Sequence record: MZ475898.1
DNA length: 64,000 nucleotides
Direction: 5' to 3' (one strand)
A program made the translations under genes and the position numbers. Shown here piece after piece: positions 25,697 to 57,947 of this stretch; position 1 is the first letter of the stretch; each line of letters starts with the position of its first letter. Under the pieces are notes generated by a model that did no database searches, was not told the origin of the DNA, and worked only from the letters and a program-made list of their open reading frames with translations.

Positions 25697-27460
25697 TTAG
25701 AATGCCTTACGTTCAACATTCGAATAATACGTTTCGTACGGCTCAGAATACAACTCAGGACCGCGCTGCGCACGCACAGTAACATAGCCTGTATGGCGAT
25801 TCACTGCGGTGATTTCGATAGTAGGCTGTTTAGGCTTAATCGTGCCGTAGATAGGCGCGTTCATCGTTGGTGGGTCTGTCTGAATCTTGTTTACAGATTG
25901 CAGTGCAGCACCAGACAGCGTAGGGAACTTAAAGCGCAATTCAGCACGCGTGCGCCCTGTAGCGATCTTGATACTACCCGCAGGCAGTTCAACGCCGCTC
26001 TGTTTCAAGTAAGCTGCGATGCGACGACCGATACCCGCCAATTGGTTCTTAGCGACAGGGTCCATCAGACCATCGAAACTAATAGCTGATTGCGGTTGAT
26101 TCACTGACAGATGCATACCAGTGTTGAAGTAGCCTTCTGCGAGGAAGCGATACAACTGACGAACAATCTCAGGAGTGTTCTGTGCGATCACAGGCGTCAA
26201 CAACTCAGGTGGGTTGGTCTTCATTGGGTCGCGGTATTCAACCTGACCTTGCGAGTAACCCATGCTGATATGCTTAACACGAGGATAAGCAGACTGCAAT
26301 GAACCAGTAGAGCGAATCAGGATAGAGCCAGACTTCGCTTGATCATACAGTTCATCGCTGGTGGTTGTTGAGAACAGGAAGTAGTCGGTAGGCACAGCCA
26401 TACGACCGATAGCTTCGATTGCTTTCGTCTGTACTTCTTTGATCGTCGAGCCGAACACTACACGACTGCGATTAGGCTGAGCGGTAGACACAGCAAAGAA
26501 TGCACCGTACACCACCTTCTGGTCTTTGACGATAGGCGAAGCAGACTTAACCTTTTGACCGCCTGGCAGTGGAGGTAGCTTAACGCCCACCAGCTTGCCT
26601 TTAGTGATTGCTTTGTTAGCAACAACAGGCTTCAAGGAAGACAGCAATTTGTTCAACTCAGACCCGTCAAGAATCTTCTCCAGCGGAACAACGAGGTTCT
26701 GCGGCAGATAGTGTTTCTTGCGCAACGTATAGATAACGGTGTCTTTCTTGATCTGTAACGGAGTAGCCATGTTACGACCAGCTTGACCAACAGGCTGGAA
26801 CGTATTCGCTTTGTCCTGACCAACAGAGCCGAACTCTTTGTCAAACACAGACTGACCGATGATGTTCGCTGCACGCAGATGACCACGCACGTTGAACACA
26901 ATCTTAGGTTCATCTTTCATGCGCAACTCATAGCGGTCACGCGTCAGATAGACCATACTGAACTTGTCGCCTTTCTCCAGCTCAAGGTCATACTCATCGT
27001 TAGCGTCATCGATAACAACTTTCTTACCCTGATAGGTAGCGTACACGCGAGCGGCAGCAGACTCCGAAGCAATCTTCAACGCTACGCCACAGTTAGACAG
27101 CGCGGTAGCATAGTTGGTTGCGTGGAACAGCGCGTCGTTCGATTCCGTGATAGCGACTTCTTTACCGCGTACGCCCAGCGCAAGGTGGATAGCGCTAGAG
27201 CTGGACATGAACACAGTGTGACCTGTATCTTCATGCTTACCAGCAAAGGACATACCACTAACACGCGACACAGACAGCGCATTCAGGTGCGGAGTAGTGA
27301 ACGTATCACCCGCAGCAAAGTCAAAGATTTCACCTTGACGCCACGCGTAACCGATGTTGTTTGAACTCAAGCCAACAAACGCATCACCCACCTGTCGAAT
27401 CGTAGTAGGGATAATGCTGAGATCGCGGACGATCTGATTTTGTTTCTGAATGATGGTCAT
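25697..27460 (-). CDS. Putative virion-internal protein with Ser-motif-rich leader
   Basis: 587 aa; leader with several S-x-S motifs ending ASESA, then the shared ~70-aa domain. Confidence 0.7.
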   Translation of the reverse strand: MTIIQKQNQIVRDLSIIPTTIRQVGDAFVGLSSNNIGYAWRQGEIFDFAAGDTFTTPHLNALSVSRVSGMSFAGKHEDTGHTVFMSSSSAIHLALGVRGKEVAITESNDALFHATNYATALSNCGVALKIASESAAARVYATYQGKKVVIDDANDEYDLELEKGDKFSMVYLTRDRYELRMKDEPKIVFNVRGHLRAANIIGQSVFDKEFGSVGQDKANTFQPVGQAGRNMATPLQIKKDTVIYTLRKKHYLPQNLVVPLEKILDGSELNKLLSSLKPVVANKAITKGKLVGVKLPPLPGGQKVKSASPIVKDQKVVYGAFFAVSTAQPNRSRVVFGSTIKEVQTKAIEAIGRMAVPTDYFLFSTTTSDELYDQAKSGSILIRSTGSLQSAYPRVKHISMGYSQGQVEYRDPMKTNPPELLTPVIAQNTPEIVRQLYRFLAEGYFNTGMHLSVNQPQSAISFDGLMDPVAKNQLAGIGRRIAAYLKQSGVELPAGSIKIATGRTRAELRFKFPTLSGAALQSVNKIQTDPPTMNAPIYGTIKPKQPTIEITAVNRHTGYVTVRAQRGPELYSEPYETYYSNVERKAF

Positions 27461-27468
27461 ATTGATCC

Positions 27469-27903
27469 CTAATACGAAACAAGGCGGAAGGCATTCTTCT
27501 TGAGAAGATTCAAATTGCCTAACATGAGACTGTAGGCCATTGTGCCGTGCTCTTTAATAAGCTCGTCAGGCACAAGTGAACCGAAATAAATTGAGCGGTC
27601 TGGACGTGAGTTAATCTCAATGCCACTAGACTTCATTGCATTCGGTACGATGAAGCACCAAGGCTCTGCAACGTACTTACCTTTCACATACTGAACTCTA
27701 TAGCCAACGGCAACGCGCTGGCCTTTCGGCGGGCTGTATGAAAAGACATCCGTCTGCAATTCGAGGGCTTTCGATACGGAGAAAAGCGCCATAGTCAGAA
27801 AGCGTTGCTCGAATTGTGGAATGAATGCGTTGTCTTCGCATATCTTTTTCAGTACAGCCTCTTGCCGTGCTCGTGGGAACGAAGCGAAGAGGCTCAGGTT
27901 CAT
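27469..27903 (-). CDS. Hypothetical protein
   Basis: 144 aa in operon context. Confidence 0.65.
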   Translation of the reverse strand: MNLSLFASFPRARQEAVLKKICEDNAFIPQFEQRFLTMALFSVSKALELQTDVFSYSPPKGQRVAVGYRVQYVKGKYVAEPWCFIVPNAMKSSGIEINSRPDRSIYFGSLVPDELIKEHGTMAYSLMLGNLNLLKKNAFRLVSY

Positions 27904-28514
27904 CCGAGACGCGCCAGAATTTGTCGAACAACCTCAGACACAGATGCCGTTTCAGTATCGATAACAAGATCGAAACCACCAGGCACTTGCTTGTAGCGTT
28001 CGCTGTACTGCTCGAACACTTCTTTGGTCTGACGTTGTTCTATGCGGTCTTCACCACCAACGCGATGTTTACGGCGCTCTACCGAAGTCTCGTAAGAAAC
28101 ATTCAGCAGCACAGTAAGACGCTTCTCAGGTGCGAGCACTTCCCACGTATGACGATAGATGCGATCATTGATATCCGAATCACCCGCTTGATAAACGAAG
28201 GTGGACGGGTAACCACGGTCAGCAATAATCATCGTGTTCGGTTCGTTAGCGAGAATACGCTCGTAGGAATTCATGGTCGATGAACGCGCGGCCAAGAACA
28301 GCAGCATTTCGGTGCGACTGTCCATATCTGTTGCGAGGCCGCCTCTGTCGTTAAGCAGAATATCACGCAGATGTTCTGACAAAGGAGTACCACCAGGCTC
28401 GCGCAGTCTCAGGACCTGAGAACCACGTTGTTGCAAAATTTCGGAGATTGCTGTGCAAACTGTAGATTTGCCAGAACCTTCGGGACCTTCTACTAAAAGA
28501 TAAACAGAGTTCAT
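27900..28514 (-). CDS. tmk: Thymidylate (dTMP) kinase
   Basis: P-loop EGPEGSGKST, REPGGT, LLFLAAR, IADR motifs. Confidence 0.95.
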   Translation of the reverse strand: MNSVYLLVEGPEGSGKSTVCTAISEILQQRGSQVLRLREPGGTPLSEHLRDILLNDRGGLATDMDSRTEMLLFLAARSSTMNSYERILANEPNTMIIADRGYPSTFVYQAGDSDINDRIYRHTWEVLAPEKRLTVLLNVSYETSVERRKHRVGGEDRIEQRQTKEVFEQYSERYKQVPGGFDLVIDTETASVSEVVRQILARLG

Positions 28515-28523
28515 AGGGATTCC

Positions 28524-29015
28524 TTAGGCAAATCGCCCACCACGCCATGCGGCCTTGATGAGCAACTTAGCCACGATTTCGTTCTTCATTGTCTTTCGCT
28601 TCGCATTGCTACGGACAAATGCAGAGCCGAACTTATTCACGACAATCAAACCAACACCGCTCACGCGTATGCGTTCGATTATTCTATCGCCGTGAGATTC
28701 AAACAGAGCCTCGTCTATGGCAAAGTACATACGCATACAAAACGGTAGATACTTGTGCCACTTCTTATCGGTATTGAAATCGGCCCAGCAACTCTTAACC
28801 TCAGTGATAATCATATCGCATTTGGTATTAAGGCAGAACACGTCTGCTCTTAGGTTGCCGTGCTTAATCAAACCCAGCTCAACATGACAGGAATAACGTT
28901 TGTCAATCCAATAACGCTGAGCTGCCTCAGTGATAAACATAGTCCTATCAGGACGACTCATTGAGGTAAAGACTGCCTGTGTTTGACGTTCAGCTTTGCG
29001 GCGCTTAAAGGCCAT
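28524..29015 (-). CDS. mmcB: MmcB-like PD-(D/E)XK endonuclease
   Basis: RADVFCL...IITEVKSCWADFNTDKKWHKYLPFCMRMYFA matches the MmcB family pattern. Confidence 0.8.
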   Translation of the reverse strand: MAFKRRKAERQTQAVFTSMSRPDRTMFITEAAQRYWIDKRYSCHVELGLIKHGNLRADVFCLNTKCDMIITEVKSCWADFNTDKKWHKYLPFCMRMYFAIDEALFESHGDRIIERIRVSGVGLIVVNKFGSAFVRSNAKRKTMKNEIVAKLLIKAAWRGGRFA

Positions 29016-29460
29016 ACGAGTCGATAATGTCCAGCGCCTGAGCTAAAATTGGGCGGAGTTTCTTGTCCACCTTCTTTAGAGCTTTATCAGCACTGAACCA
29101 CTTACGCTCACGCATGCCTGCTTCATCGTATTCAGTCAGTTCCTGCTTGACCTTCATGATGAACCATTCAACGTTCTGGGCGCGGCCGGTCTTGCCTTTA
29201 ACATACTTCATAATGTCGATGAAGTCTTTAGGCTTACCGAGAATGCCGCCTTCTTCCATGGCTTCTTTAAGCGCGGAATCCAGTGGCGTCATACCTTTCT
29301 CAACGCCACCTTTAGGGAATCCCCAATTGTTTCCGTGTGTGGTGCGAATCAACAAGATCTGCACTTCACCTTTTTTCTTTTTGTATGGGACAACGCCTGA
29401 CTGCTTACGCGCTTTCTTTTCAGAAGGCAGCTTAGCAGAGAGTGACACATTCAGCATCAT
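29005..29460 (-). CDS. Nudix hydrolase
   Basis: Nudix box WGFPKGGVEKGMTPLDSALKEAMEEGG. Confidence 0.92.
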   Translation of the reverse strand: MMLNVSLSAKLPSEKKARKQSGVVPYKKKKGEVQILLIRTTHGNNWGFPKGGVEKGMTPLDSALKEAMEEGGILGKPKDFIDIMKYVKGKTGRAQNVEWFIMKVKQELTEYDEAGMRERKWFSADKALKKVDKKLRPILAQALDIIDSYGL

Positions 29461-29957
29461 AGATAATCACTTCCACGAGGCATGTTCACTTCCCAGCGAC
29501 CAGAGTTGTCTACCCACAGACCATTATCCTGCAGGCGCTTGTATGCATCATACAGAGAGCATGAGGCGAGCACTTGCAGTTCGGTACCGAAGTCCGACAT
29601 TGAATAGCTGTAGATAGATTCAGGCAGGTACGACAGGCGCTGGCCTTCATACGAGTCGTGAACAATACAGCCATCAGCATCAGTAACAACAGCGTGAGAT
29701 GCAACGAGGGTAGGCCCCAGAACAACGATACGATAGTCTGGGTGCTTGTTGTAGTTGCGCTGAATGAACAACGCAGCTTCTGCAAACGGACGTGCGACTT
29801 GCGCAGCGCGTGTGCAGTTTTGCTCAAACGCAGATTCAGACAAAGAGCGTGCACCAGTCAAATTCATGGCCGATGCAAAAATCATTGTTGTCAGATCGTT
29901 TGGTGCGATAGCTGTGGGGAAGAACTTCGTGCCCCACGCTTGATCTAAAGAAAGCAT
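29457..29957 (-). CDS. Hypothetical protein (possible Cys-His-Asp fold)
   Basis: 166 aa; AGGAG SD; NC..AA, SHAVV and HD spacing. Confidence 0.65.
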   Translation of the reverse strand: MLSLDQAWGTKFFPTAIAPNDLTTMIFASAMNLTGARSLSESAFEQNCTRAAQVARPFAEAALFIQRNYNKHPDYRIVVLGPTLVASHAVVTDADGCIVHDSYEGQRLSYLPESIYSYSMSDFGTELQVLASCSLYDAYKRLQDNGLWVDNSGRWEVNMPRGSDYL

Positions 29958-29987
29958 GGACCGTCTCCTTATTCGATAGTCTAAACT

Positions 29988-29995
29988 AAATTAGC
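29988..29995 (-). promoter_or_regulatory. Candidate late promoter motif GCTAATTT
   Basis: 31 nt upstream of ATG 29957. Confidence 0.55.
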
Positions 29996-29996
29996 G

Positions 29997-30287
29997 TTAA
30001 TCAGCAGGACAGATAAGGACTTGTCTGCGATTCTGCATAAAAGACTTTGGAGCAGGGCCACCTATCACGATAGCGTATTTTAACAGGAAGCCGGGCTTCT
30101 TTGTCGCTACGTTACAGCCACCGTGTGAAAGAGCTGCTAGTGCTTGACTGCGAAAAGGACCGGTCAAGCACAGCGTATGAGCGAAGAAGGGTTTGCTCAC
30201 CTTCTTCATTGTTCTGCTCATCAGAGCGCGGATAGCTTCGCATTGTTCCGCAGTAGGTTCAGCACCGCAATAAACATCGAAATGCAT
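29997..30287 (-). CDS. Stand-alone BRCT-like protein
   Basis: 96 aa; HTLCLTGPFRSQALAALSHGGCNV...YAIVIG resembles the ligase BRCT pattern (FTG...R...l...Gg.v). Confidence 0.45.
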   Translation of the reverse strand: MHFDVYCGAEPTAEQCEAIRALMSRTMKKVSKPFFAHTLCLTGPFRSQALAALSHGGCNVATKKPGFLLKYAIVIGGPAPKSFMQNRRQVLICPAD

Positions 30288-30988
30288 TATGCGCCCTTAA
30301 TAGTCATCAGGCTCTTGTACAGGCCGAACTTCTTCGAGAAGTCAGCAAGCGCATAGCCAGCCATATCTGCGGAATCAATCTGCTTAGTGATCAGCTTGCA
30401 GTTGGATGCGCTCAGGTTGTTTGTCTTGTCTTCATACAGGACAAGGGTGTGGCCATCATAGCGCTTATCGTCCGTAAAGAACACACCAAACTCTTTCCAC
30501 GAGCGAGTGCCGTACTCAAGGACGAACACCGATGCTTCATAGAAGCCAGTGCCCATCTCCTGACTGTTGTCGTTAAGGAAGTGCTGGTCAATGTGGTCAG
30601 CAGCAACAACGTCAATCGTAATAAACTCACACACCTCAGGACAGTTGCGCAACCACGCACGCATACTGCGATCAAAATACGCAGCCAGTGCGCAGCAGAT
30701 GCAGCTACGATTGTTCGGGTCTTTATCGACGCGAGGGATAGCTGTCAGCAAACGATCATACACAGCCCACGAGATGAAATCTGTGTCCAGACGTCCATCC
30801 GAGTACTCGTATTCTTCGTCGTTGATAACGAACAGATTGTGGCGCTGCATGTTGATGTTGCCTAATACATGCTTAACGCGGTTCATCTGCCCGTAAGGGA
30901 ATTGGAATAGAACCTCGGTATTGATAACACGAGGTACGCCATTTTCTAAGTAGGCAAACTCCATAGGGTGCCGTAATACAGAACGCAT
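30287..30988 (-). CDS. Hypothetical protein
   Basis: 233 aa, coupled to neighbouring genes. Confidence 0.7.
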   Translation of the reverse strand: MRSVLRHPMEFAYLENGVPRVINTEVLFQFPYGQMNRVKHVLGNINMQRHNLFVINDEEYEYSDGRLDTDFISWAVYDRLLTAIPRVDKDPNNRSCICCALAAYFDRSMRAWLRNCPEVCEFITIDVVAADHIDQHFLNDNSQEMGTGFYEASVFVLEYGTRSWKEFGVFFTDDKRYDGHTLVLYEDKTNNLSASNCKLITKQIDSADMAGYALADFSKKFGLYKSLMTIKGA

Positions 30989-30998
30989 TGTCTTTCCT

Positions 30999-31787
30999 TT
31001 AGTTTAGGTGGATTATCTGGCCATTAGCTGTAATGTCTTGACCTGCTTCAATTCCGACGCGGCCTTTGACGTCCAGAGTATCATCGCCCTTTATTGTGGT
31101 CTTGCGATTACCTTCAATCACAACTGTCTGATTGCCTGTAATCTTCGTGTACTGATTACCACCATCACCTTTCGCAACACCAGCAAACTTGATGCGCTTC
31201 TTAGGGTCAGGCTTGAGAGCTTTAGGCGTCATTGTAGGGTCATTCAAGATATAATCAGGAATGTCGTTCTTGCTACCTGTAACGATAAGCTGTTGGTTGC
31301 CTACGATGGTCTGATTCACGTCACCCATGATCGTCATGTTGAAATCACCAGACGTCACAAGGAAGTGTTCGTTAGTCAGACGGTCGATAATCAACTGCGT
31401 GCCTGTAGACAGACGGACGCCCACACGATGTGGATAGTTGATCAAGAACTCAGGCAGCTTATCAGCTTCTGTCATACGCACGTTGGTGCTGTATACGCCT
31501 TCGTGCAACTGACCAGTAGGGAATCTGACAGATACCTTAGCGCCCATCATAGGAACAAACTGTGCACCGAATACAGTTCCAGTAGAACCGCCTTTGAGTC
31601 CTTCGAGATGACCGATGCCTGGACGAATCCACGGAATCATCTCATCAGGAATATCATCGGTAAGGCCCATGATGCGTGCGCGTATCATCTGAATCTTCTT
31701 GGGGTCGGAGCTATCAATAACAATAGCCTCGTACTCCATTTGCGGGTCAATCCCTTTCTTTGAGTTTACAGCATTTAGAGGAATCAT
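30999..31787 (-). CDS. Baseplate central spike (gp5/VgrG-like OB fold plus beta-helix)
   Basis: YEAIVIDSSDPKKIQMIRARIMGLTDDIP...PWIRP OB fold; VxG repeats at the C-terminus. Confidence 0.85.
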   Translation of the reverse strand: MIPLNAVNSKKGIDPQMEYEAIVIDSSDPKKIQMIRARIMGLTDDIPDEMIPWIRPGIGHLEGLKGGSTGTVFGAQFVPMMGAKVSVRFPTGQLHEGVYSTNVRMTEADKLPEFLINYPHRVGVRLSTGTQLIIDRLTNEHFLVTSGDFNMTIMGDVNQTIVGNQQLIVTGSKNDIPDYILNDPTMTPKALKPDPKKRIKFAGVAKGDGGNQYTKITGNQTVVIEGNRKTTIKGDDTLDVKGRVGIEAGQDITANGQIIHLN

Positions 31788-33682
31788 TGTTTTACTCGCG
31801 GTAGGTACATCTCAAGTTTCTCACCGTCTGGCGTGCCTGTTTTATTAGAGCCATCAACAGTGCCATCACCGAGAGAACACAGGAAGTTACGCAGGTCTTC
31901 TTCTGCCTGTCTGATCAACTGGCTCAAGTTAGTGCTCGGCCCCATCAGCTTACTGATAGAGGAAGCATCGAGACACTTGTCAGGCAGAGAGTTGTCCAGC
32001 ATCTTCTGCATATCATCAAGTTTGTTTGAGACGCAGCGCTGGTTAATCTGAGGACCATCAAGATACTCGGCGGGAATATCACCGTTAGCGATAAGACCGT
32101 TAATATCGCCGGTCATGCCGCCAAGCATATTCTCCATGCTATCCAGACGACCAGCAAGTCCATCGAGTATGCCTGTCTTATAGTTGATGGACAGGTCAAC
32201 GCTCATCTTCTGGAGTTTGTTGAGCGCAGCACACATGCCCGTAAGCAGCTTGGCTAGGCTGAACTCCTGCATAAGACTGTTTAGGTAGTCAGCACCTTCA
32301 CCGTACTTAGCGGCCAGCTCTGGGAACTTGAACGCTTCGCTGTCTACTTGGAACTGGTTAAGCATCACATCAAGTTTGAGACTGTGTTGCTGTGCAATCC
32401 AATCGAGCGGGCTAGCACCGTCAAGCGCCTGTTTGATGTTCGCGTTAATCTGCATAGGGCGCAGAATGTTAGCGACAGTATCGAGAGGAGTAAGGATGAT
32501 GTTCTTACCACCACCGATATTCGACGTGCCTTCAACAGGAGTGAAGTTACGGGCCAACAGGAATGCTTCGCTGTACATGTGCCCTGAGTAAACGCGAGTA
32601 CGCCCGATGATAATCCACTTGCCTGACAGCTTCTCATCGAGAATCAGTTCACGGTTAGAAGACACCATGCCAGCAGTCACTTCGACAATATCAAACAGGT
32701 CAACCTCAGGACAGCCGCCCATGATAAGTGCGCGTGCAGTCTCGGTATACGTCATTGCCTGACGTTTGTTTGAATAGAACGCCTGCATGTACTTATCGTG
32801 CAGGTTAATGTCGTTCGACGGTCGGGCATAGGCTTTACGTGCACCAACAATATCACCACGTGTATCGCTGTTGATGTTTAGAGGGTCACGGCCTTTGACA
32901 GTCACTGTGGACATTTCATTGACAGCACCTTTACTATCAGCCCACAGCAGCTTGTCCCCATAGTTCGACATACCGTTGAAGATACCGCTAAGAGATTTCG
33001 GGCGGAACTCATGCACGTTGTACTCAGGACTACGACCTGTTGGCGTGTGGTTAAACGTCCAGTAAGCTACAGGGTCTTTGTCAAACTGAGCATTGAGGTC
33101 ACGCACTATCATGCGCTTGTCTGCGCTGATAATCATCTTAGGTGCAGCTTCTTCCGATATCCAGATGTGCTGCTCAATCTCCGACGCAAACTTCTTAGGC
33201 GAACACGCAGCAGACACCCAACTCATAATGTCTTTGGTCTGCATATCACCTGAATCAAGCGTAAGCCCACACGACTGTGCGACTGTGCGTAGCGCCTCAA
33301 GGCTGGTGGATCGCATTGCATAGGAGCGAGAGTCGAAGAGGAACTTGGGTGCATCGATAGCACACAGCACGTTCATCATATGGAAGCCACCCTCGTCGTA
33401 CTCACGCACGGCAAACACACTAAACGTCAGTGTCGTGGATCTGTCAACTGAGGGACCAGTGGTTATCGTGATCTTTGTACCATCAACGATAGCGTGGGAG
33501 CTACGCAGGATATTCGTGCGATCAGCTAATACGAGAAGACAGGCAGGAACAGCGAAGGTGTTTTCATACGTGTGAACGTTGCGAACAAGATTCGGTGCAT
33601 CCGGAGGAGCTTTACCGTCAAGCAACAGACCAAAGTAGCCCTGATTCTTGACGCCACCAGCGGAAGGATTTTCCATCGCCAT
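31784..33682 (-). CDS. Baseplate hub protein (gp27-like) with helical C-terminal extension
   Basis: 632 aa directly upstream of the spike; beta-rich N-terminal ~390 aa. Confidence 0.65.
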   Translation of the reverse strand: MAMENPSAGGVKNQGYFGLLLDGKAPPDAPNLVRNVHTYENTFAVPACLLVLADRTNILRSSHAIVDGTKITITTGPSVDRSTTLTFSVFAVREYDEGGFHMMNVLCAIDAPKFLFDSRSYAMRSTSLEALRTVAQSCGLTLDSGDMQTKDIMSWVSAACSPKKFASEIEQHIWISEEAAPKMIISADKRMIVRDLNAQFDKDPVAYWTFNHTPTGRSPEYNVHEFRPKSLSGIFNGMSNYGDKLLWADSKGAVNEMSTVTVKGRDPLNINSDTRGDIVGARKAYARPSNDINLHDKYMQAFYSNKRQAMTYTETARALIMGGCPEVDLFDIVEVTAGMVSSNRELILDEKLSGKWIIIGRTRVYSGHMYSEAFLLARNFTPVEGTSNIGGGKNIILTPLDTVANILRPMQINANIKQALDGASPLDWIAQQHSLKLDVMLNQFQVDSEAFKFPELAAKYGEGADYLNSLMQEFSLAKLLTGMCAALNKLQKMSVDLSINYKTGILDGLAGRLDSMENMLGGMTGDINGLIANGDIPAEYLDGPQINQRCVSNKLDDMQKMLDNSLPDKCLDASSISKLMGPSTNLSQLIRQAEEDLRNFLCSLGDGTVDGSNKTGTPDGEKLEMYLPRVKQ

Positions 33683-33685
33683 ATT

Positions 33686-33898
33686 TTACTCCAGAATGCG
33701 AAAAGGCCCGCTAACAAAGCGGATAGCTATGTTACTCAGGCCATGTTGTTTCAACAGTTTTGCACAGCAGTTGCAGCAAAGTCTTTTGTCAGTTGGATTG
33801 ATTACGGACGAGGCGTATTCGCTTATCACGTAATTGTCGTACGGTTCATCGCAGAACTGACACAGCTCCTGCTTTTCGAGTGATACTCGGATGCGCAT
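33686..33898 (-). CDS. Small zinc-finger protein
   Basis: 70 aa; CQFC...CCNCC. Confidence 0.55.
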   Translation of the reverse strand: MRIRVSLEKQELCQFCDEPYDNYVISEYASSVINPTDKRLCCNCCAKLLKQHGLSNIAIRFVSGPFRILE

Positions 33899-33900
33899 GG

Positions 33901-34299
33901 TTAGCCCTCGGCGTCAAGCTCCAGCGCAATGGCTTTCAGTTTCGCAGCAAGCAACTTAATCTCAGAAGACTTGGCTTGCATGTTAAAGCCACCACGCCCT
34001 GGTTTTATTTCAGAGTCTTTCTTCGTGTTGTACCACTTGCGCACTTCTACGACACGGTTACCGGCATCATCGTTAGCGAGATCAACAGACAGGAAGGTGT
34101 TAGGTCCGATTGCAATGCGAAACAGCTCTGGCGCAGAAGTCTCTTTGCGAGTCTTCTTTGCTTTCTCTTTCACAGGCTCAGACTTTTTAGACTTCTTAGC
34201 AGGCTTCTCTGTCTCACGTTCGACAGGCTTAACCTTGCTCAGGGTCTTCTTGATCTTCTTCGCTTTCGCGCCAACGATTTTGCCGTTAACCATTGCCAT
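33901..34299 (-). CDS. PC4/YdbC-like ssDNA-binding protein with Lys-rich N-terminus
   Basis: FLSVDL...VVEVRKWYNTKKDSEIKPGRGGFNM resembles the PC4 motif (IDIREYW...KPGRKGISL). Confidence 0.7.
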   Translation of the reverse strand: MAMVNGKIVGAKAKKIKKTLSKVKPVERETEKPAKKSKKSEPVKEKAKKTRKETSAPELFRIAIGPNTFLSVDLANDDAGNRVVEVRKWYNTKKDSEIKPGRGGFNMQAKSSEIKLLAAKLKAIALELDAEG

Positions 34300-35308: not shown

Positions 35309-35319
35309 AGATAGTCCTC

Positions 35320-48704: not shown

Positions 48705-48734
48705 AAGGAATGAAGTCGTTGAATCGACAGGTTG

Positions 48735-48742
48735 AAATTAAC
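48735..48742 (-). promoter_or_regulatory. Variant promoter motif GTTAATTT
   Basis: One mismatch to GCTAATTT; 31 nt upstream of the scaffold ATG. Confidence 0.4.
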
Positions 48743-48767
48743 GAAAGCAGAAAAATTTAAGGTATTT

Positions 48768-49898: not shown

Positions 49899-50677
49899 TA
49901 ACGCATCCGCAGCAGGTGTTCTTTGTACGTTGCAGCACAAGCAAACGCTGGGTCATCCACAGAGCTACACTCGAAACCAGTGAGGCCCTTACAGTCACGA
50001 TACACCAGACGGCCTGTACGTGCATCCAAATACGTAGGCTTGTTGAACGCTGTGTGCGAACAGAAGTTACGATTCTTCGGCGTTACCATCTGACCACAGA
50101 TACTGCATTTATAAGCACGGTAGGTTGTGCCCTTGCTGTATGTGTTCAGTTCACCGCTGAGAATACGGTCACAACGTTCCTTACAGCGCGTGCGGTCAAA
50201 CGCCAGCAACAGAGTCAGACGCGCATGATTGCCACGGAAGTTTTTCAGCTTAGACAGGTTCGAGTCAAAGATCATGCCCATTGCTTGGCGATAGTCTTTG
50301 TTGTTGTGCTCGATAAACGTCGGCTTACCAATGAACGTCTGATACGCAAGGCGTCCTTGATCAGGGTTAAACGTCAACCATTCCTGCAAGCTGAATGCAT
50401 CACCGTTAGTGTTCGGCAGCTCCGTGATGTTTACCACAACAGGCGCAATGATATAGTCACGGATATCACGCGAGGTGTTGTACATCTCAGCAGCTTTAGG
50501 CAGCCACACGTTAACGTCGAGGTTAAAAGATCCCGTCTCAATACCGAAACGCGAAGCATCAACACGAATAGACTTAGCGTTTCGGCTAACATCTTCTTTG
50601 TGCATATCAATCGCGTTCAGTCCGACGAGGCCCATGTCTGAGGTATCAAACGACTCAGACTTGATGAGCTGGGTCAT
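49898..50677 (-). CDS. Prohead maturation protease (HK97/S78-like) with zinc ribbon
   Basis: KPTFIEHN (His), SKG (Ser candidate), CSICG...CSH, FECSSVDDPAF terminal motif; upstream of scaffold and capsid genes. Confidence 0.75.
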   Translation of the reverse strand: MTQLIKSESFDTSDMGLVGLNAIDMHKEDVSRNAKSIRVDASRFGIETGSFNLDVNVWLPKAAEMYNTSRDIRDYIIAPVVVNITELPNTNGDAFSLQEWLTFNPDQGRLAYQTFIGKPTFIEHNNKDYRQAMGMIFDSNLSKLKNFRGNHARLTLLLAFDRTRCKERCDRILSGELNTYSKGTTYRAYKCSICGQMVTPKNRNFCSHTAFNKPTYLDARTGRLVYRDCKGLTGFECSSVDDPAFACAATYKEHLLRMR

Positions 50678-50687
50678 CGTGTTCTCC

Positions 50688-51104
50688 CTATTGGAAATTG
50701 TTTATGTTATCAAGGCCGCAATTGGCTAGACGCACATGCGACTCGGGCACCTCGAAGAGTTGAGAGCAACCCAAGTCGGTCAGTTGATATATCAATCGTC
50801 CATTAGAAATTATTGCGTTTTCAACATAGGCAGCAACTTCTGTACCATCTTCTTGCTTGACCATAACTTCAACTCCAGGATAGAATACGTCGAAACTCTT
50901 GGAGCTAAAGATAGGTCGAACAATGTCGGTCTCTGCAACAGGATGCTGGGCATAGCGCGTTTGAATCATATACAGCGCACAGTCACCGCTGATCAGGATA
51001 GTATTGATTGTGCCACGCAGATTGTACGGAGCACCCTGAGCAGTAGTGCCAGCAACGAACGTGACAATATCACCGATGTTATACGCAAACGAGAACTGAG
51101 CCAT
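50688..51104 (-). CDS. Hypothetical protein with tandem SH3/KOW-like barrels
   Basis: Start re-called at ATG 51104 (GAGG SD); YNIGDIV and FYPGVEV repeats. Confidence 0.6.
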   Translation of the reverse strand: MAQFSFAYNIGDIVTFVAGTTAQGAPYNLRGTINTILISGDCALYMIQTRYAQHPVAETDIVRPIFSSKSFDVFYPGVEVMVKQEDGTEVAAYVENAIISNGRLIYQLTDLGCSQLFEVPESHVRLANCGLDNINNFQ

Positions 51105-51105
51105 G

Positions 51106-51960
51106 TTAACCTCGAAGTGCACCACGCGCCCAAGACTTAGCGAGAGCCAGAGTCATGCGGCTAGGGTTCTGGAGTTTGACTTCACCTCGATGAACAGCAG
51201 TGAACGGTTCATTAGGGTTCTCGCTGCGTCCAGAACGATACGCAGATTCATTGAAGCCATCAAACAAAGTAACCAGCCAGCCAGTTGACTTATCAGAGCA
51301 TTCGCCGCACTTGTTGTCCCAGCTAATCTTACCGCATGTACGGCCACCAGCATTGATAGCGTATGACACACGGTCTTTGTCAGAGTAAACGTCCTTAGCA
51401 CGAATGGTCTTGAACGTCACACGAGACGAGGATTCGGAGCGCGGCATCATGCGTGCTTTAATCGCTTCTGCATCAATCGAGGACCAGAATGATTCAAACA
51501 GCATACCTAGCTTCTGATCGATAGGCAGCTTGAGTCCATTGATTTGCGCAATGGTACTGGAGCTATCATTGATAACGCGATTCAGGAAGTAGCCACCAAT
51601 GATTATCGGCAGCTGTGTTCCCTGTGAGCCTACAGTGATACCAGATTGCTTGCAGTAGATCTCAGACAGACCGATAGCAAGACGCGCAAGAACCTTGAAC
51701 GTCTCCTTCTCTGTCGTGTTTGCGATTTCAGTATACAGACGCGCTGCAATGTTCGGCACGACTGTACGCTTGGCAACGCTGGCAATATCTTCGGCTGTGA
51801 TAGTCTGGCCCAGTTTCTTCTTGGCAGCTAACGCAAAGGCGTTATACAGGCTGGCTTTGTTCTCCGACGTCAGGGCCTCGTTCAGCTTGCTGATCGTCGT
51901 CTCCGCGCTGCTTTTCAGACTCGGAGTTTGAACTGTTTTGAGTCTCGCAACTTTCGGCAT
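51106..51960 (-). CDS. Hypothetical protein
   Basis: 284 aa; CAGGAG SD. Confidence 0.7.
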   Translation of the reverse strand: MPKVARLKTVQTPSLKSSAETTISKLNEALTSENKASLYNAFALAAKKKLGQTITAEDIASVAKRTVVPNIAARLYTEIANTTEKETFKVLARLAIGLSEIYCKQSGITVGSQGTQLPIIIGGYFLNRVINDSSSTIAQINGLKLPIDQKLGMLFESFWSSIDAEAIKARMMPRSESSSRVTFKTIRAKDVYSDKDRVSYAINAGGRTCGKISWDNKCGECSDKSTGWLVTLFDGFNESAYRSGRSENPNEPFTAVHRGEVKLQNPSRMTLALAKSWARGALRG

Positions 51961-53074
51961 TGGAGTTTTTCTCCTGGTTGAGGGCTTGCTTCGCTAAAAT
52001 CCCAAGCAGGCCAGAGGCTTTGATTTCTGTCTCAACGTCAAGCCCACGATGCAGACTGAGTTGAGCTAAATAGTTCAATGCAGGTTCGACCATATTAAGA
52101 TTACGACAACCCCAATAGGCACATTCGTAACATAAGTCTAAATTAACAGAGGTCTGGTCAAACAAGAAACTTTTTGGATTCTGTTGCGCAACAGACAGTC
52201 CCTGGATAGCCATGCCCACAGAGTTGATCATATCGTCACGGCGATAGAAAATATCAGACAACATCGCGTAGCATTCAATACGATCAGAGCGGGCTGCAAT
52301 AGCACGGTAGCAGCAGTTAACGGCTTCCTGAATAAAGCCCTGCTTGAACGTTGCTTTTGACAGTTCCAGATTAGCCACAGCAACATAGTCAGACCACGTT
52401 GCGAGTTTGGTGAGACGTGCCACTTCGGCGCGTGCATCATCAAGCAGGTCAGCACGGTCATAGTAAGCAACCGAGTAGCACAGCTCACGCGCATAGTAAA
52501 ACGAGCAACGCTGGTCACGAGGCCAATCGCCCGCATCACGCGCCAGCTCCATGAGATAACCACGAGGCTTAGTGTGATCTGGGAAATGGTCAGTAGCGAA
52601 CTCAGCACGCACAGTATGCGGTGGGTTACCTTCACGAATACGCATCAATACTTCATGCGCACGGTAACGCCACGTATACGCTCGGCTCTTGTATGCTTTC
52701 ATCTGGTCATACTGGCTATCGCCGTTACGCATCAGAATCCAAACACCATCAGCCTGTTCAATGTCAGGCATCTGACGTAACTTCTCAACCCAATCTGGAT
52801 CGTCGAAGCGTTCATCAATGTCCAGCCAAACGATTAAATCATCTTCATGGAATGGCGCAGCGGCCAGGTCGCGACTTGCACCCAGATTGCGTTCTTCGGA
52901 GATGTCCGTAGAGTGATACAGCGCTGGGTGCGCGAACTCGGAAACAATCTGAGTCGTTGCATCAATGCTGCCTGTGTCCACGATACTGATAGCATCAGCA
53001 GCAGACACATGCTTCAACCACTCGGCCATATTCTTTTCTTCATCACGGCAGATAGCCGCTACGCAAATTCTCAT
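51842..53074 (-). CDS. GT2 family glycosyltransferase with TPR-like C-terminus
   Basis: ICRDEEKN, IVDTGSIDAT, WLDIDE (DxD), YRAHE; helical repeats (FYYAREL, AVNCCYRAI). Confidence 0.9.
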   Translation of the reverse strand: MRICVAAICRDEEKNMAEWLKHVSAADAISIVDTGSIDATTQIVSEFAHPALYHSTDISEERNLGASRDLAAAPFHEDDLIVWLDIDERFDDPDWVEKLRQMPDIEQADGVWILMRNGDSQYDQMKAYKSRAYTWRYRAHEVLMRIREGNPPHTVRAEFATDHFPDHTKPRGYLMELARDAGDWPRDQRCSFYYARELCYSVAYYDRADLLDDARAEVARLTKLATWSDYVAVANLELSKATFKQGFIQEAVNCCYRAIAARSDRIECYAMLSDIFYRRDDMINSVGMAIQGLSVAQQNPKSFLFDQTSVNLDLCYECAYWGCRNLNMVEPALNYLAQLSLHRGLDVETEIKASGLLGILAKQALNQEKNSNAESCETQNSSNSESEKQRGDDDQQAERGPDVGEQSQPV

Positions 53075-53085
53075 GAGTGCCTCTT

Positions 53086-53994
53086 TTATACAAGAACGTT
53101 ACCGCTATCCCACCACTTCTTGCCATAGATTTCAGACAGGCGGTAGTCAAGCACGATTGGTTGGTCAAGATCGACCTGAAGGATATCGCGACCTAGTGCA
53201 GCGCTATAAACTGTTTTCTCCTCAGTGTATACGCGTATCTCTAGTTCCATGTCGCCTTGCGAATACTTGGGAACGAACGGCACATTCAGATCGCCATTGA
53301 ACCCCTGACCGAGCGTATCGTCAAAGTAAGTAGACATACGAATCTCGGTGCCCTGATTGATAACTGTAGGTGCGTACACCGTGCGATTGTTATACGCCGT
53401 GTAGTCAGCTACCGTGGACTGTTGTACCAGGCGCCGCTTATAGATGCGCGTTACGCCTTTGTCGTCCACTACCGTACGATACTGATTGTAGAACCAGTTG
53501 ATCTCATAGAACTTAACTGGCTTGAGGCCAGCAGATGAAACCAACGAGGCAGTCATACGGTGATAGGTCTTCTCCGTATTCAGACGGTAGAGCAGAATCT
53601 TAAACGCGTACCATTGGTAAACGTCTAACGTGATTGAGCCTGCATCTGATTGCTGAGTACCGTTAGTGAGGATATACGAGAAGCAATCACCACCAACGTA
53701 ACCGCTACGGGGATCGTAAATGAACGCATCACTAAAGCTATTCAGTTCGACAGTACCTAACAGTGGGTCGCTCACTTTGATTGCAGCAAGGCGCCAACCA
53801 CGCTGGGCTGGAACCTTGTCGAGAACGCCTTCTGTGGGACTGTGGCCTGTTAGCTCGTCGCGTGCGCCTTGCAGAATTTGATCGATAGTGATTTCAGTTT
53901 TACCTGAGTTCTTCACACGTATCGTTCTGTTTGGTGCTATTGGCTTATAGTTGCGCCAGTAGTCAAACGTACAAGGCAAAGAGAGCATAGTCAC
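53086..53994 (-). CDS. Virion protein with Ig/cadherin-like domain
   Basis: FIYDPRSGYVGGDCFSYILTNG Big_9-like motif. Confidence 0.6.
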   Translation of the reverse strand: MTMLSLPCTFDYWRNYKPIAPNRTIRVKNSGKTEITIDQILQGARDELTGHSPTEGVLDKVPAQRGWRLAAIKVSDPLLGTVELNSFSDAFIYDPRSGYVGGDCFSYILTNGTQQSDAGSITLDVYQWYAFKILLYRLNTEKTYHRMTASLVSSAGLKPVKFYEINWFYNQYRTVVDDKGVTRIYKRRLVQQSTVADYTAYNNRTVYAPTVINQGTEIRMSTYFDDTLGQGFNGDLNVPFVPKYSQGDMELEIRVYTEEKTVYSAALGRDILQVDLDQPIVLDYRLSEIYGKKWWDSGNVLV

Positions 53995-55961
53995 TCCAAC
54001 TTATATTTACGTCGGAACTCTGCTAGACCCATGACAGGAATGCCTTTGTCCATGGCCTTCTGGAGTTTCGCAGAACCCGAGCCTGGGTCTTTGGCGATAA
54101 GAATGGTTGTATCTGCTTTCATGCTATCTGAGGCAGTACCACCAAGCTCAACGATACGCTGCATCAGTTCACGATCACGAATGCCCGTGAATGCAACGTT
54201 AACGCCTTTCAGCTTAGAACTCGTCACCTGAACACGTTTCGGTGCCACCAGCTTGACACCGATTTCATTCGCAAGCTGATACGCAGAGACACACGCAAGA
54301 GCAATGTCAGGTGATTTCGTTTTGATGCCGTGAATGTCCGAGATAGCTTTAGCGAGCGCCAGAGGATTCTGTTTGCGCACTAGCTTGTCAAGGTCAGGCA
54401 CGCTATCGACCACTTTATCAAACGTAGTGTTGGCGCCACGCATGAAGTACGGCGAGCACGCTTTAAGCCACGTATTGACAGCAACGCCTGAGCGTAATGC
54501 TTTGAGGTCTTTCGCAAGCTGAGCGCCACGCGAGTCACCAACCACTTCACGCAGCACACCGATAGTTGCAGCAAACAAACGGGCAGGTGTATCAATGCCA
54601 GACTCTACGAGCAGCTTCGACGTACTCGGTCCTGTGTTAGCAACGTCCAATCCTTTGAGGAATGAACTGAGCAGTCGAGTAGTGCCTACCTCAGTCTTGG
54701 TATTGATAACAAACTCAACGCCATTGACTTTGTAAGGCACGTCAGGCAGCTTTGGCTTCTTCGCAGGCTTGAGAATCTCCATGATGTATGGGATTACCTT
54801 ACCACTACGAATCAGCTTGACTGTAGCACCTGGGCCAAGAGGCTTCTTAGCATGAGGTGCAGTCGCTTTACCTTTAGGCTTGAGATAGCCGTGCTCAACA
54901 TAGAATCCATTGTGGCCATTAGCACGCTGCACAGTGACGCCACCAGTCATCAGCGTTGGTGGGAAGATGATAACAGGCTGCAAGATACCGTACTTGGTTT
55001 CTTGGTAGATAACATCCTCTACCTTAACGATCACTGTGTCAGCTTCTGCATTCATTTTAAACTTGAATGCGTGCTTTGGATTGGATGCAGTCGCTTTAGG
55101 GCTAGGCACATCTTCCGTGAGTACAACACCATCCAGCTCGTAAATAGCTTTAGACAGACGGCGCTCCAAGAACGCGATCAACTCATCTTCTGAATTGAAG
55201 CGCTTTGGTGGCGTATGCCTAACGACTTCGAATCCCCAGCGCTCTAGCAGGGCGAACTGCTTAGACTGTTTGAGCGTAGCACCGTCACCGCCGATGATAG
55301 AGAAGCACACCATGCGGACGTACTTGAACTCGGACGCTGTTTCAAAGTTACGCACAAGTCCAGACGCAGCGTTACGAGCGGCCTTGAAGCGACCACCAGC
55401 AGACTCATGCATCTTAGCCATGAATGTCTTTTGAGGAATGAGTGCCTCAAAGCGCAACACAGTCTGACCCCTGACTGGAATCTTTTTAGGGATTTTCATC
55501 GCAGGGATATGATGGGATACGTCTTTACCGTGAGTAGCATCGCCACGAGTGTACGCCTTTACAGGCACACCGTCTTGATACACAATCTCAAGGCTCAAGC
55601 CATCGAGCTTGTCCGTTGCAACGTAGTCCACATCTTTCGACAGTGCTTTGGCAATCTGCTTCGAGCCCGCCTGAAACTGATTGAGACTTGCCATAGGTAC
55701 AGGCAGCTTAACATCAGCATCATCACGCTGACCAATCTTACGAGCCAGCTTAGACTTGGGCCATTTAGCGTCGATGTAGTTACGGATGGAATCGTACACT
55801 GCATCGCTCACCAGACCTTCATCATCCGTATGATATGCGTTGTCCAGAGCGGTTATTAAGTTACGCACTTGCGTCTGGTTCAAGGTGTCCAAGACCTTTT
55901 GAGGGTTCTTGGACAGTTGCTTGAGACTAACAGAGGCAGAAATAGAAAGCCTTACTTTCAT
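53991..55961 (-). CDS. ligA: NAD+-dependent DNA ligase
   Basis: Domain Ia AYH...VSDAVYD; KLDG adenylation motif; ELDGVV; AFKF; C-terminal BRCT (FTG...ELGG...KLQKA). Confidence 0.95.
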   Translation of the reverse strand: MKVRLSISASVSLKQLSKNPQKVLDTLNQTQVRNLITALDNAYHTDDEGLVSDAVYDSIRNYIDAKWPKSKLARKIGQRDDADVKLPVPMASLNQFQAGSKQIAKALSKDVDYVATDKLDGLSLEIVYQDGVPVKAYTRGDATHGKDVSHHIPAMKIPKKIPVRGQTVLRFEALIPQKTFMAKMHESAGGRFKAARNAASGLVRNFETASEFKYVRMVCFSIIGGDGATLKQSKQFALLERWGFEVVRHTPPKRFNSEDELIAFLERRLSKAIYELDGVVLTEDVPSPKATASNPKHAFKFKMNAEADTVIVKVEDVIYQETKYGILQPVIIFPPTLMTGGVTVQRANGHNGFYVEHGYLKPKGKATAPHAKKPLGPGATVKLIRSGKVIPYIMEILKPAKKPKLPDVPYKVNGVEFVINTKTEVGTTRLLSSFLKGLDVANTGPSTSKLLVESGIDTPARLFAATIGVLREVVGDSRGAQLAKDLKALRSGVAVNTWLKACSPYFMRGANTTFDKVVDSVPDLDKLVRKQNPLALAKAISDIHGIKTKSPDIALACVSAYQLANEIGVKLVAPKRVQVTSSKLKGVNVAFTGIRDRELMQRIVELGGTASDSMKADTTILIAKDPGSGSAKLQKAMDKGIPVMGLAEFRRKYKLE

Positions 55962-56000
55962 GCTTTTCTCCGATCGACATTAACACTCTTGTTTACAGTG

Positions 56001-57947
56001 TTATGATGCGATAGGGTCCTTGTTGACCTCGTAATCTTCCGCCATGTCGTACACGCGATTGAACAGCTTAGGCGCCATATCTTTCACATGCTCGGCATAG
56101 TCGAACAGGTTCTGCTTACGCGCACGATTGACACGCACCTGACGTACTTCGTCTGGGCTATTCGTAATATCGTACAGCGTATACACAACGATGTTATCAG
56201 AGGAGTTATGAGTGCTTACCTTGAGGACTACCCAATCGCGTTGCAGTTTAGCATCAGCCTTGAAGCGGAGGACGTCGCCCTCTTCGGCTTCATCTGCACG
56301 CGCATCAGGAGTAGACTTGTTAGTTGCGGCAATCTTCTTCGCAGTCTCGGCAGCTTCTTTCTCTGCCTCAGCCACATCAGAATCTTGGTCTTCATCCGCT
56401 TCTGTTTCGTCTACGGCGTCAGAGGTATCGTCAGCGGAGTCGTCGTCTTCTTCGTCGTCATCTCCAGACGTATCTTCCTCGTCATCTCCTCCGTCGTCGG
56501 CATCATCAGATTCCACATCGGAGTCGTCATCTGAATCGTCGGAGCTATCATCCCCATCCTCATCATCAGACTCTGAATCGCTATCGTCAGCATCTTCTTC
56601 TGCATCTGGATCGTCCTCTTCCGTTTCGTCGTCTGGATCAACGTCACCGCCTTCAGGGTCATCCTCTTCCAGCTCGGAGTCATCGTCGAGGTTAGCCTCT
56701 TCTGAGTCGTCTGGCTCATCATCCTTGGTTGAGTTCTTAACAGAGCCGCCTTTCTTGCGAACCTTAGACTTAGGAGCAACTTCCTCTTCGTCATCATCTG
56801 GTTCATCAATGTCAGACAGGTCAAGCTCAGAATCGACTTCGTTGTCTGCGCTATCGTCACCGCCGAACATAGAGCTAACGGTGTCTTCCAGACTGAATAC
56901 ATCACCTGCAAACGGGCTACGTTGAAGAATGTCTTCAAGGCGTTGCTCATCGAGGTCCTGCTCAAGGTCCAGATGTTCTTCGATAGCATCATCGAGGTTT
57001 TCATGCTCAATGACTTTAGGCAGACGACGACGATCATTCAGGCCAGGGTCATCAGAGTAGATGGTACGCTGAGGTCCTGTAGGCGCTTCAATCTCACCGT
57101 CACGCACTTTGCGTCTGAGGTCACGCATCTCTGCGCTACGCTCACGAGCTTTCTTACGTGCTTCCTGTGCGAGTTCCTTGCGCTGTTGTTTGCGCTCAAG
57201 GGCAGATGCCTCACGACCTAAACGTTCAGCTTCTTCCTGTTCACGGCCTTCGCGATGGCGAGCACGACGAACCATACGACGATACTGTTTGATAGTATCA
57301 ACATCAACACTACCAACAGGCCAGTCATTAAGAGGCAGAATGTTTGTGTCATGCACAATCAGATCGTACTGGGCGTCATCGACTTTCAGGAACAGGCCTT
57401 CTGTGTTGATAACGATACCGCCTTTGCCTTGACGCAAGAAACGCACGCCAATCATATCGTTGCGGTACATCTTATAAATACCCTTGGTAGTCTTCACAGG
57501 ATATTCAGTGCCAGGCACCATGCGCCATTGATAGTTGGCAAAGTCAACGCCATACACAGCTTCTGACTTAACCGATTTCGGCATAAAGCGAGGAGCATCA
57601 AACAGGGTGCGATTGATCTTACGCTCAAGGCTCTTAGCGCCAGCAACGCGTGCAGTAGTACCGGCCTCACGTTTAACCACAGCTGGTGGTTTACGCAACT
57701 TAGAGCTACGTTCAATGAGGAGCAGACCTGTCGTTTTGTCGAGAGGGAAATCGACGTGCGGCATGTCTGGGAAAATCAGTGTATAACGACCACCATTCCT
57801 GAGTGGCAGAATACCAAAAGTGTCGCCATTACGAATCATACGTTTGTGTGATCGCTGCGTCACCTCTCGTCCACGTGAACCAGTAAACTGCATCCACGCG
57901 TACTTCGATACGGCATCTTCATATGATGCGGATTCGGAGAGTACCAT
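56001..57947 (-). CDS. Acidic low-complexity protein with SESAS leader and two copies of the shared domain
   Basis: 648 aa; MVLSESAS; charged helix; ~200-aa D/E tract; C-terminal SH3-like barrel. Confidence 0.75.
   Translation of the reverse strand: MVLSESASYEDAVSKYAWMQFTGSRGREVTQRSHKRMIRNGDTFGILPLRNGGRYTLIFPDMPHVDFPLDKTTGLLLIERSSKLRKPPAVVKREAGTTARVAGAKSLERKINRTLFDAPRFMPKSVKSEAVYGVDFANYQWRMVPGTEYPVKTTKGIYKMYRNDMIGVRFLRQGKGGIVINTEGLFLKVDDAQYDLIVHDTNILPLNDWPVGSVDVDTIKQYRRMVRRARHREGREQEEAERLGREASALERKQQRKELAQEARKKARERSAEMRDLRRKVRDGEIEAPTGPQRTIYSDDPGLNDRRRLPKVIEHENLDDAIEEHLDLEQDLDEQRLEDILQRSPFAGDVFSLEDTVSSMFGGDDSADNEVDSELDLSDIDEPDDDEEEVAPKSKVRKKGGSVKNSTKDDEPDDSEEANLDDDSELEEDDPEGGDVDPDDETEEDDPDAEEDADDSDSESDDEDGDDSSDDSDDDSDVESDDADDGGDDEEDTSGDDDEEDDDSADDTSDAVDETEADEDQDSDVAEAEKEAAETAKKIAATNKSTPDARADEAEEGDVLRFKADAKLQRDWVVLKVSTHNSSDNIVVYTLYDITNSPDEVRQVRVNRARKQNLFDYAEHVKDMAPKLFNRVYDMAEDYEVNKDPIAS

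Follow-up and report, generated by a model that had tools for sequence, protein, structure and literature searches.

A conserved S-x-S leader on unrelated proteins of Erwinia phage pEa_SNUABM_25 is a candidate tag for prohead targeting and processing

We analysed a 64,000-nt stretch of DNA (the window; the prefix w marks positions within it) that matches, at 100% identity, bases 62001-126000 of the 263,017-bp record MZ475898.1 of Erwinia phage pEa_SNUABM_25, a jumbo phage in whose record all genes are labelled 'hypothetical protein'. About 16 proteins of this phage begin with a shared N-terminal leader, M-x(1-14)-[VIL]-S-x-S-[A>F,K], and we conclude that this motif is a real, selected signal that acts at the level of the protein. 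As to its function, we give about an even chance to the reading that, judged from the protein sequences, the leader is a capsid-targeting and propeptide tag comparable to the capsid-targeting sequence (CTS) of T4, trimmed after its second serine by the head protease of the phage. Four carriers of the leader are encoded in the window, and a related N-terminus is found on the protease itself:

w29431-29460, minus strand: leader MMLNVSLSAK of the Nudix hydrolase (gene w29005-29460, 151 amino acids (aa))
w40793-40822, minus strand: leader MLIFLSESAS of a 225-aa KMPT-N protein (gene w40145-40822)
w55923-55961, minus strand: leader MKVRLSISASVSL (MKVRLSISAS) of the NAD-dependent DNA ligase (gene w53991-55961, 656 aa)
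w57924-57947, minus strand: leader MVLSESAS of a 648-aa KMPT-N protein (gene w56001-57947)
w50648-50677, minus strand: N-terminus MTQLIKSESF of the prohead serine protease (gene w49898-50677, 259 aa)

A sequence-only reading of this stretch had already drawn attention to these strings, and all of them are present on the minus strand at the genes named, with one methionine to be restored to the Nudix leader. We rebuilt the full pEa_SNUABM_25 genome and used the genomes of AD1, Yoloswag, SNUABM5, PaBG and phiR1-37 for comparison. The enrichment at N-termini that had been proposed as a check is found when the whole rebuilt genome (263 kb) is counted: the first 20 residues of its proteins contain 12 instances of S[ELI]SA where 0.83 would be expected (14-fold; Poisson P ~1e-10, for a pattern picked after the data had been seen), the remaining ~77,000 positions contain nine, and [LVIFM]S.SA[SKPAT] is seen nine times against 0.65 expected. 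An unbiased scan of short patterns placed S.SA, VSL and SL.A among the top ten for N-terminal enrichment. The count of about 16 carriers combines the S[ELI]SA proteins with variants at the fourth position and leaves out a 177-aa match whose motif is not conserved; beyond the window, the carriers are proteins of 388, 90, 1944, 429, 359, 333, 198, 148, 183, 178, 219 and 270 aa. The description of the carriers as unrelated largely stands, in that homology past residue 22 links only three pairs (225/648, 333/359 and 270/388), leaving about 13 families that are unrelated outside the leader, with the qualification that the 648-aa and 225-aa proteins, together with a 587-aa protein that has an internal copy, are KMPT-N paralogues. 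Counting the doubtful 177-aa match, 15 of 17 leader genes lie in a minus-strand block with head and tail genes (P = 1e-4).

The serine codons vary among the leaders (CTC TCC GAA TCC, CTG AGC GAG AGT and CTT TCT ATT TCT), and both serine codon families, TCN and AGY, are used across the copies. Because the codons differ from copy to copy, the motif acts at the protein level, and a DNA-level repeat or regulatory element is ruled out. The assigned starts are well founded: in Nudix the ATG shares bases with the preceding gene's stop codon (ATGA), the ligase and 225-aa genes are preceded by GGAG ribosome-binding sites, and there is no further in-frame methionine downstream of the leader starts. We also rejected a Sec or lipoprotein signal peptide, as just three to five hydrophobic residues stand ahead of S-x-S, there is no cysteine, and a linker rich in lysine, proline and threonine follows.

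The relatives of pEa_SNUABM_25 comprise Alexandravirus (Alexandra, AD1 and SNUABM3), Sasquatchvirus (Y3), Yoloswagvirus, Rivsvirus (SNUABM5) and Salmondvirus (JA29), with Pseudomonas phage PaBG and metagenomic contigs (L078 and L079) more remote. Orthologues from five genera retain the two serines, whereas the middle residue and the flanking sequence drift. In 13 families both are retained even in the remotest orthologue, although identity over the first 120 residues is no more than 33-83%; estimated naively from those identities, the chance of such retention is ~7e-8. A logo of 57 sites has V, I, L or A at the position before the first serine, then Ser, x, Ser, then Ala in 41, Phe in six and Lys in five, then a stretch rich in lysine, proline, threonine and serine; the middle residue is Leu in 22, Glu in 14, Thr in seven, Val and Ile in four each, with others in the remainder. 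Individual families illustrate the pattern: SESA, SVSA and SLSA alternate among orthologues of the 648-aa protein, SLSA, SLSV, SLSQ and SLSD in the 148-aa family, and SLSA and SLSF in the 219-aa family. From these comparisons we conclude that the two serines are under purifying selection.

The in-window families differ in how faithfully they carry the leader. Orthologues of the 648-aa protein begin MVLSVSAS (AD1), MVLSESAS (Y3) and MHSLSAT (Yoloswag and SNUABM5), with the KMPT-N domain at residues 16-81; those of the 225-aa protein, with the domain at residues 21-85, have SESA, SESA, SASA and SVSA. The Nudix motif V-S-L-S-A-[KR] recurs in AD1, Y3, Yoloswag and SNUABM5, making five genera in all, and the Pfam NUDIX domain begins at residue 22. 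Among 19 database homologues of the Nudix protein, 11 have an S-x-S leader, three a variant, and five start at the R-K-Q-S-G-V core. Compared with the PHROG ligase profile, whose match begins at residue 24, the ligase leader is extra N-terminal sequence; it is kept in SNUABM5 (MKVQLSLSASVSL) and JA29 (MTEFKSISASISL), which with the pEa_SNUABM_25 lineage makes three genera. Since Nudix homologues occur with the leader, with a variant or at the bare core, and since the ligase has the leader in three genera and none in others, the leader behaves as a modular add-on. In the contig L078, whose protease is 41% identical, a KMPT-N protein begins MKSESAR and a topoisomerase IB begins MTISKLIMVSQSAD. 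This topoisomerase gene with its S-x-S-A leader has an Acb1-family (anti-CBASS) gene nearby (L078:7824-9539 and L078:6748-7236).

The protease carries the motif on its own N-terminus, where S-x-S-F is kept across 35 homologues, down to ~40% identity. H124 and S181, which are invariant in the same 35 homologues, are the probable catalytic residues, and a Cys3-His zinc ribbon is inserted in the protein. An AlphaFold2 (AF2) model has a predicted local distance difference test (pLDDT) score of 84, with residues 1-17 disordered, and matches T4 gp21 (5JBL) at VIA Z 10.5 over 139 residues with a root-mean-square deviation of 2.9, far above the next match; matches in BFVD include COG3740 and prohead serine proteases (predicted, HK97-type). 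A search of the protease against Pfam protease families gave no match even at E up to 10, Peptidase_S78 included, no Pfam domain is precomputed for any of 62 homologues, and Pfam and solved-structure sequence searches returned zinc-finger noise only. On the strength of the model we conclude that the protein is an assemblin-fold prohead serine protease of the clan of T4 gp21 and HK97 gp4. The earlier label 'HK97-like' is apt as regards the fold, the nearest solved structure being T4 gp21, and finds no counterpart in a Pfam protease family. The Yoloswag orthologue (P0007) is named 'putative endolysin' in NCBI and UniRef, probably a misannotation.

The internal strings quoted in the sequence-only reading (IASESA, SLSESA, four DFDSES, DSESS and ALSQS) are all present as well, and lie in the following proteins:

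w27056-27073, minus strand: IASESA, residues 130-135 of the 587-aa KMPT-N protein (gene w25697-27460)
w45574-45591, minus strand: LVHSQS, residues 63-68 of the capsid protein, in the linker after the conserved N-terminal segment; a candidate maturation site
w45673-45684, minus strand: LSQS, residues 32-35 of the capsid protein, in a conserved block (quoted earlier as ALSQS, residues 31-35)
w46599-48704, minus strand: 701-aa acidic head-module protein, rich in Asp and Glu at residues 253-431, with DFDSES at residues 293, 352, 385 and 415
w44217-44621, minus strand: 134-aa acidic protein adjoining the capsid gene, with an MKTLSGS N-terminus, NSVSG in the middle and DSESS at residue 122
w29829-29846, minus strand: SLSESA, residues 38-43 of a 166-aa protein; probably a chance occurrence

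In the 587-aa protein, the KMPT-N domain (residues 139-201) begins four residues past IASESA, and the site separates a variable, poorly conserved N-terminal stretch of 130 residues from a well conserved one. Its orthologues have SESA, SESA, SMSA and SESA, and Y3 also has SESA. The capsid site at residues 63-68 reads HSQS, HSHS, HSES and QSTS in four genera, within a linker that is hypervariable and gap-rich among 67 homologues; the AF2 model gives residues 66-72 a pLDDT below 50 and predicts disorder there. A cut at residue 68 would take off 18.6% of the protein and would in this respect fit the ~20% of mass that the PaBG capsid protein loses on maturation (PMC7412058).

The 701-aa protein contains 22 S-x-S against 8.2 expected from its own serine content (P = 5e-5), the largest excess in the genome, and AD1, Y3, Yoloswag and SNUABM5 all retain its [DE][FIV][DE]SES repeats within the low-complexity acidic region. 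The four DFDSES had been placed in 'the scaffold'; the copies are there, and the role is that of a candidate scaffold or core protein. The 'ATPase' label that PHROGs and RefSeq records of relatives attach to the 701-aa protein is unsupported, with no Pfam ATPase match; Pfam gave no match for the 701-aa, 134-aa or neighbouring 235-aa protein, and an atlas search for look-alikes of the 701-aa protein gave sub-threshold leads only, including a T4_CASP cluster at a score of 0.59. Other features of the 701-aa protein are Cys-rich motifs resembling ribbons, 180 residues of D/E-rich sequence and a C-terminus rich in Ser. DFDSES is absent from the 235-aa 'structural protein'. Five genera, together with L078 and L079, retain a Ser-rich S-x-S stretch of the 134-aa protein ahead of its conserved C-terminal L-I-R-L (LIRLRLD).

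Taken together, the occurrence of the motif on the protease N-terminus, in the disordered capsid linker, at the 587-aa domain boundary and in the 701-aa repeats favours the propeptide and targeting reading. In the mechanism that we propose, the leader would play the role of the T4 CTS with a different recognition motif, and tagged proteins would be built into the prohead core along with the protease. The protease, through H124 and S181, would then cut after the second serine, with Ser at P3, any residue at P2, Ser at P1 and mostly Ala at P1'. Such a cut would remove 6-17 residues from cargo proteins, nine from the protease itself, about 68 from the capsid protein and 134 from the 587-aa protein, and would divide the 701-aa acidic protein into pieces. 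The choice of scissile bond follows from the drift of the sites: because the middle residue exchanges among E/L/V/T/I/A/M in orthologous sites while the two serines are invariant, cleavage determined by Glu, to which the motif had been likened, is unlikely; and because Pro directly follows the motif Ala in four families, a cut after Ala is also unlikely, whereas one after the second serine is allowed. Speculatively, the trimmed Nudix, ADP-ribosyltransferase (ART)-like 183-aa and 1944-aa SNF2 ATPase proteins and the KMPT-N proteins would remain inside the head and be delivered to the host together with the DNA, and in some lineages the ligase might be among the ejected enzymes. The interpretation first offered for these leaders, of protease-processed head cargo, is in this way partly supported: a selected protein-level signal is found at the places expected, and a prohead protease is encoded.

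Several observations weigh against this reading. The enrichment statistics come from a pattern chosen post hoc. Our literature search for this phage group turned up no virion proteome, no virion N-termini and no cleavage motif, the GenBank records of pEa_SNUABM_25 and Y3 hold no mass-spectrometry notes, and we know of no prohead protease with Ser at P1. A single co-fold of the protease with a leader peptide returned the verdict 'no answer' and is not used as evidence. PaBG and L079 have a weak or altered motif, with A-x-A in the corresponding leaders; the PaBG Nudix protein is without a leader, and the 690-aa L078 homologue of the 701-aa protein shows no S-x-S excess. The ligase leader is missing from Alexandra, SNUABM3, AD1 and Y3 (MQISLKRL), from Yoloswag (MAVQLSLKRL), and also from PaBG, L078 and L079. 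These losses look like small deletions, and since the leader is kept in three genera and missing in most relatives, the ligase as head cargo is, on present sequences, the weakest claim. Not all copies are credible sites. In the capsid protein, L-S-x-S-T-G-E-x-N-A is conserved in PaBG and metagenomic relatives (S33 in 49 and S35 in 47 of 67 homologues), and the LSxS at residues 32-35, lying inside this strongly conserved block, may be structural and not a cleavage site. The SLSESA of the 166-aa protein had been taken for a copy of the motif; it is kept only in Y3, with ALAESA in AD1 and PVIEQA in Yoloswag and SNUABM5, and is probably a chance occurrence. The MRVSASF N-terminus of the 177-aa protein is not conserved and likewise looks like a chance match.

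Among other explanations, the one that survives best, which we nevertheless consider unlikely, is that the tag serves solely as a strand for docking or targeting, binding scaffold, core or portal by beta-strand addition and so bringing proteins and protease into the prohead, with any cleavage taking place elsewhere or not at all. The alternating pattern of hydrophobic residues at P5, P4 and P2 with Ser at P3 and P1 resembles an amphipathic strand, the motif on the N-terminus of the protease is as plausibly targeting as self-cleavage, and the co-fold with the protease was not specific. Docking alone gives a poor account of the internal sites at the 587-aa domain boundary, in the disordered capsid linker and in the acidic-protein repeats.

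We think it still less probable that the motif has a function unrelated to the virion, as an N-terminal degron, as a site of regulated proteolysis or modification, or through an effect on the translation or folding of late proteins. Ligase and Nudix are normally cytoplasmic enzymes, and the ligase is without the leader in most relatives, as this explanation would have it; the presence of the motif on the protease, in the capsid linker and in the acidic head protein is then left unexplained, and an effect on translation is unlikely because both serine codon families are used.

A further candidate for the cutting enzyme, in the head or after ejection, is encoded next to the protease:

w48768-49898, minus strand: 376-aa KMPT-N protein with HExxH (THELAHFVDH); N-terminus MDITDYKF, without an S-x-S leader

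From its sequence we read this protein as a zinc metallopeptidase and as a second candidate peptidase of the head module. Its HExxH is conserved in AD1, Yoloswag and SNUABM5 as well, four genera in all, and three KMPT-N paralogues have S-E-S-A just ahead of the domain. Among the injected polyvalent proteins of phages, metallopeptidase domains form the main hub (PMC5512222), and for them, too, peptidase action in the head or after ejection has been proposed. Cleavage of the motif by this enzyme is nonetheless improbable in our estimation, since the S-x-S-F of the protease is kept in L078 and L079, whose 20-kb head loci show no KMPT-N metallopeptidase, and trimming of capsid and scaffold is the classical task of an assemblin-fold protease. 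Side by side in the window, the 376-aa gene overlaps the end of the protease gene. Four KMPT-N (PF20294) paralogues are encoded there, of 587, 225, 376 and 648 aa, with scores of 71, 68, 73 (376/390 aa) and 60 bits against a cut-off of 28.9.

Chance or shared ancestry, through Ser-rich N-termini and the paralogy of the 648-aa, 225-aa and 587-aa proteins, could be invoked given that about four N-terminal S.SA matches are expected and that the 166-aa and 177-aa matches are unconserved, but it is very improbable and already largely refuted by the 14-fold enrichment, by the retention of both serines in 13 families across genera while x varies, and by the lack of relationship past the leader among about 13 carrier families.

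The packaging part of the targeting and propeptide reading is favoured by the classes to which two carriers belong, which are head-packaged elsewhere. The 183-aa carrier has a match (E = 2.6e-13) to phrog_832, an ADP-ribosyltransferase family of phages, and the ART Alt of T4 is documented as head-packaged and injected (PMC9503650); the 1944-aa carrier is an SNF2-type ATPase, and the SNF2 protein DarB of phage P1 is likewise documented as packaged and injected (PMC5512222). The closest parallel is the T4 CTS, MKTYQEFIAE, which according to Mullaney & Black 1996, as cited in PMC10052503, is found on IPI-III and Alt and is cleaved by gp21. In both systems unrelated proteins share a tag of ~8-10 residues at the very start of the chain, the gene for an assemblin-fold prohead protease is close by, and one of the carriers is ART-like. 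They differ in that the T4 tag is an amphipathic helix ending in L/I-x-E, whereas here it is hydrophobic-S-x-S-A with no need for Glu, and in that carriers are far more numerous here and include enzymes not known as T4 cargo (Nudix, ligase and SNF2). The likeness extends to a tag known from sequence; targeting and cleavage are putative.

The prohead proteases phiKZ gp175 and SPN3US gp245 cut after S/A/G-x-E or A-x-E (PMC10052503). They too come from jumbo phages and have a small P3 and a free P2; N-terminal propeptides, short ones of 20-24 residues among them, are removed from many head and ejection proteins of these phages. In pEa_SNUABM_25, P1 would be Ser and not Glu, and the protease belongs to a separate sequence family (no Pfam match) with a zinc-ribbon insert. 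The phage group studied here, made up of Alexandravirus, Sasquatchvirus, Yoloswagvirus, Rivsvirus and the lineage of PaBG, does not belong to the phiKZ-like phages. Polyvalent proteins such as DarB of phage P1 (PMC5512222) share ART, SWI2/SNF2 ATPase, metallopeptidase and KMPT-N fusion domains with the set described here, and each is one giant polypeptide anchored by a MuF or portal fusion, whereas here the proteins are separate and each has its own tag. Fusion of several effector domains with a head anchor was not found; the ART-like, Nudix, SNF2 and metallopeptidase domains are in separate genes. Herpesvirus assemblins, which belong to the same protease fold clan, cut at V/L/I-x-A\S sites (the backslash marking the scissile bond), with small uncharged residues around that bond. 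The sites here differ in that Pro follows Ala in four families and in that two serines, rather than Ala, are invariant.

These comparisons lead to a broader proposal, which we put forward only tentatively: that this lineage combines a prohead protease cutting between S-x-S and Ala with a universal tag of ~8 residues that loads a dozen or more separate enzymes for co-injection. The enzymes concerned would possibly be Nudix, the ART-like protein, the DarB-like SNF2 protein, the metallopeptidase and, for certain genera, the ligase, with topoisomerase IB joining them in one distant relative, an assignment that we regard as equally provisional. If the processing reading is correct, it would provide a substrate specificity for an uncharacterized prohead protease family, unlike the Glu rule of T4 and phiKZ, that occurs in jumbo phages of Erwinia, Dickeya and Yersinia, in PaBG, phiRSL1 and phage G, and in cluster C mycobacteriophages. 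The motif would then predict head cargo and ejected proteins, normally found only by proteomics, from sequence alone, flagging the Nudix, ART-like and SNF2 ATPase proteins as possible early-acting enzymes. A tag of ~8 residues would also be useful for loading foreign proteins into capsids, and the arrangement would represent a modular, easily swapped alternative to polyvalent proteins.

We tried phiR1-37 as a stand-in for a proteome and rejected it as too distant: neither BLASTP nor tblastn detected homologues in it for the ligase or the other leader proteins, there was no motif enrichment, and its Nudix protein g060 is without a 'structural protein' note. A genome-wide N-terminal scan of PaBG was noisy, gene starts being unreliable in this 56% GC genome. 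In the window, 1.3 kb at w24379-25696 is without an annotated gene in an otherwise densely packed genome; it contains no tRNA and no Rfam family, its similarity to AD1 is weak, and it is absent from Yoloswag and SNUABM5.

Gene order around several carriers is recognizable. A KMPT-N protein followed by the NAD-dependent DNA ligase forms a syntenic pair adjoining the head module, with or without the ligase leader, at w53991-57947, L078:3812-6252, L079:3064-6266 and PaBG 173160-176296, and is thus found even where a relative's protease is only ~41-47% identical. At w27900-29460 (minus strand), genes for a dTMP kinase, an MmcB-like nuclease and the Nudix protein are clustered just upstream of baseplate genes (gp5/VgrG-like OB protein, w30999-31787), and only the Nudix protein has the leader. 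Beyond the window, homologues of the 198-aa and 359/333-aa carriers are fused in one reading frame in Yoloswag (160413-162050) and SNUABM5 (163782-165722), and the fused frame keeps the second leader (MSLIRL...VSESAK) internally, as would be expected for a polyprotein cut at S-x-S.

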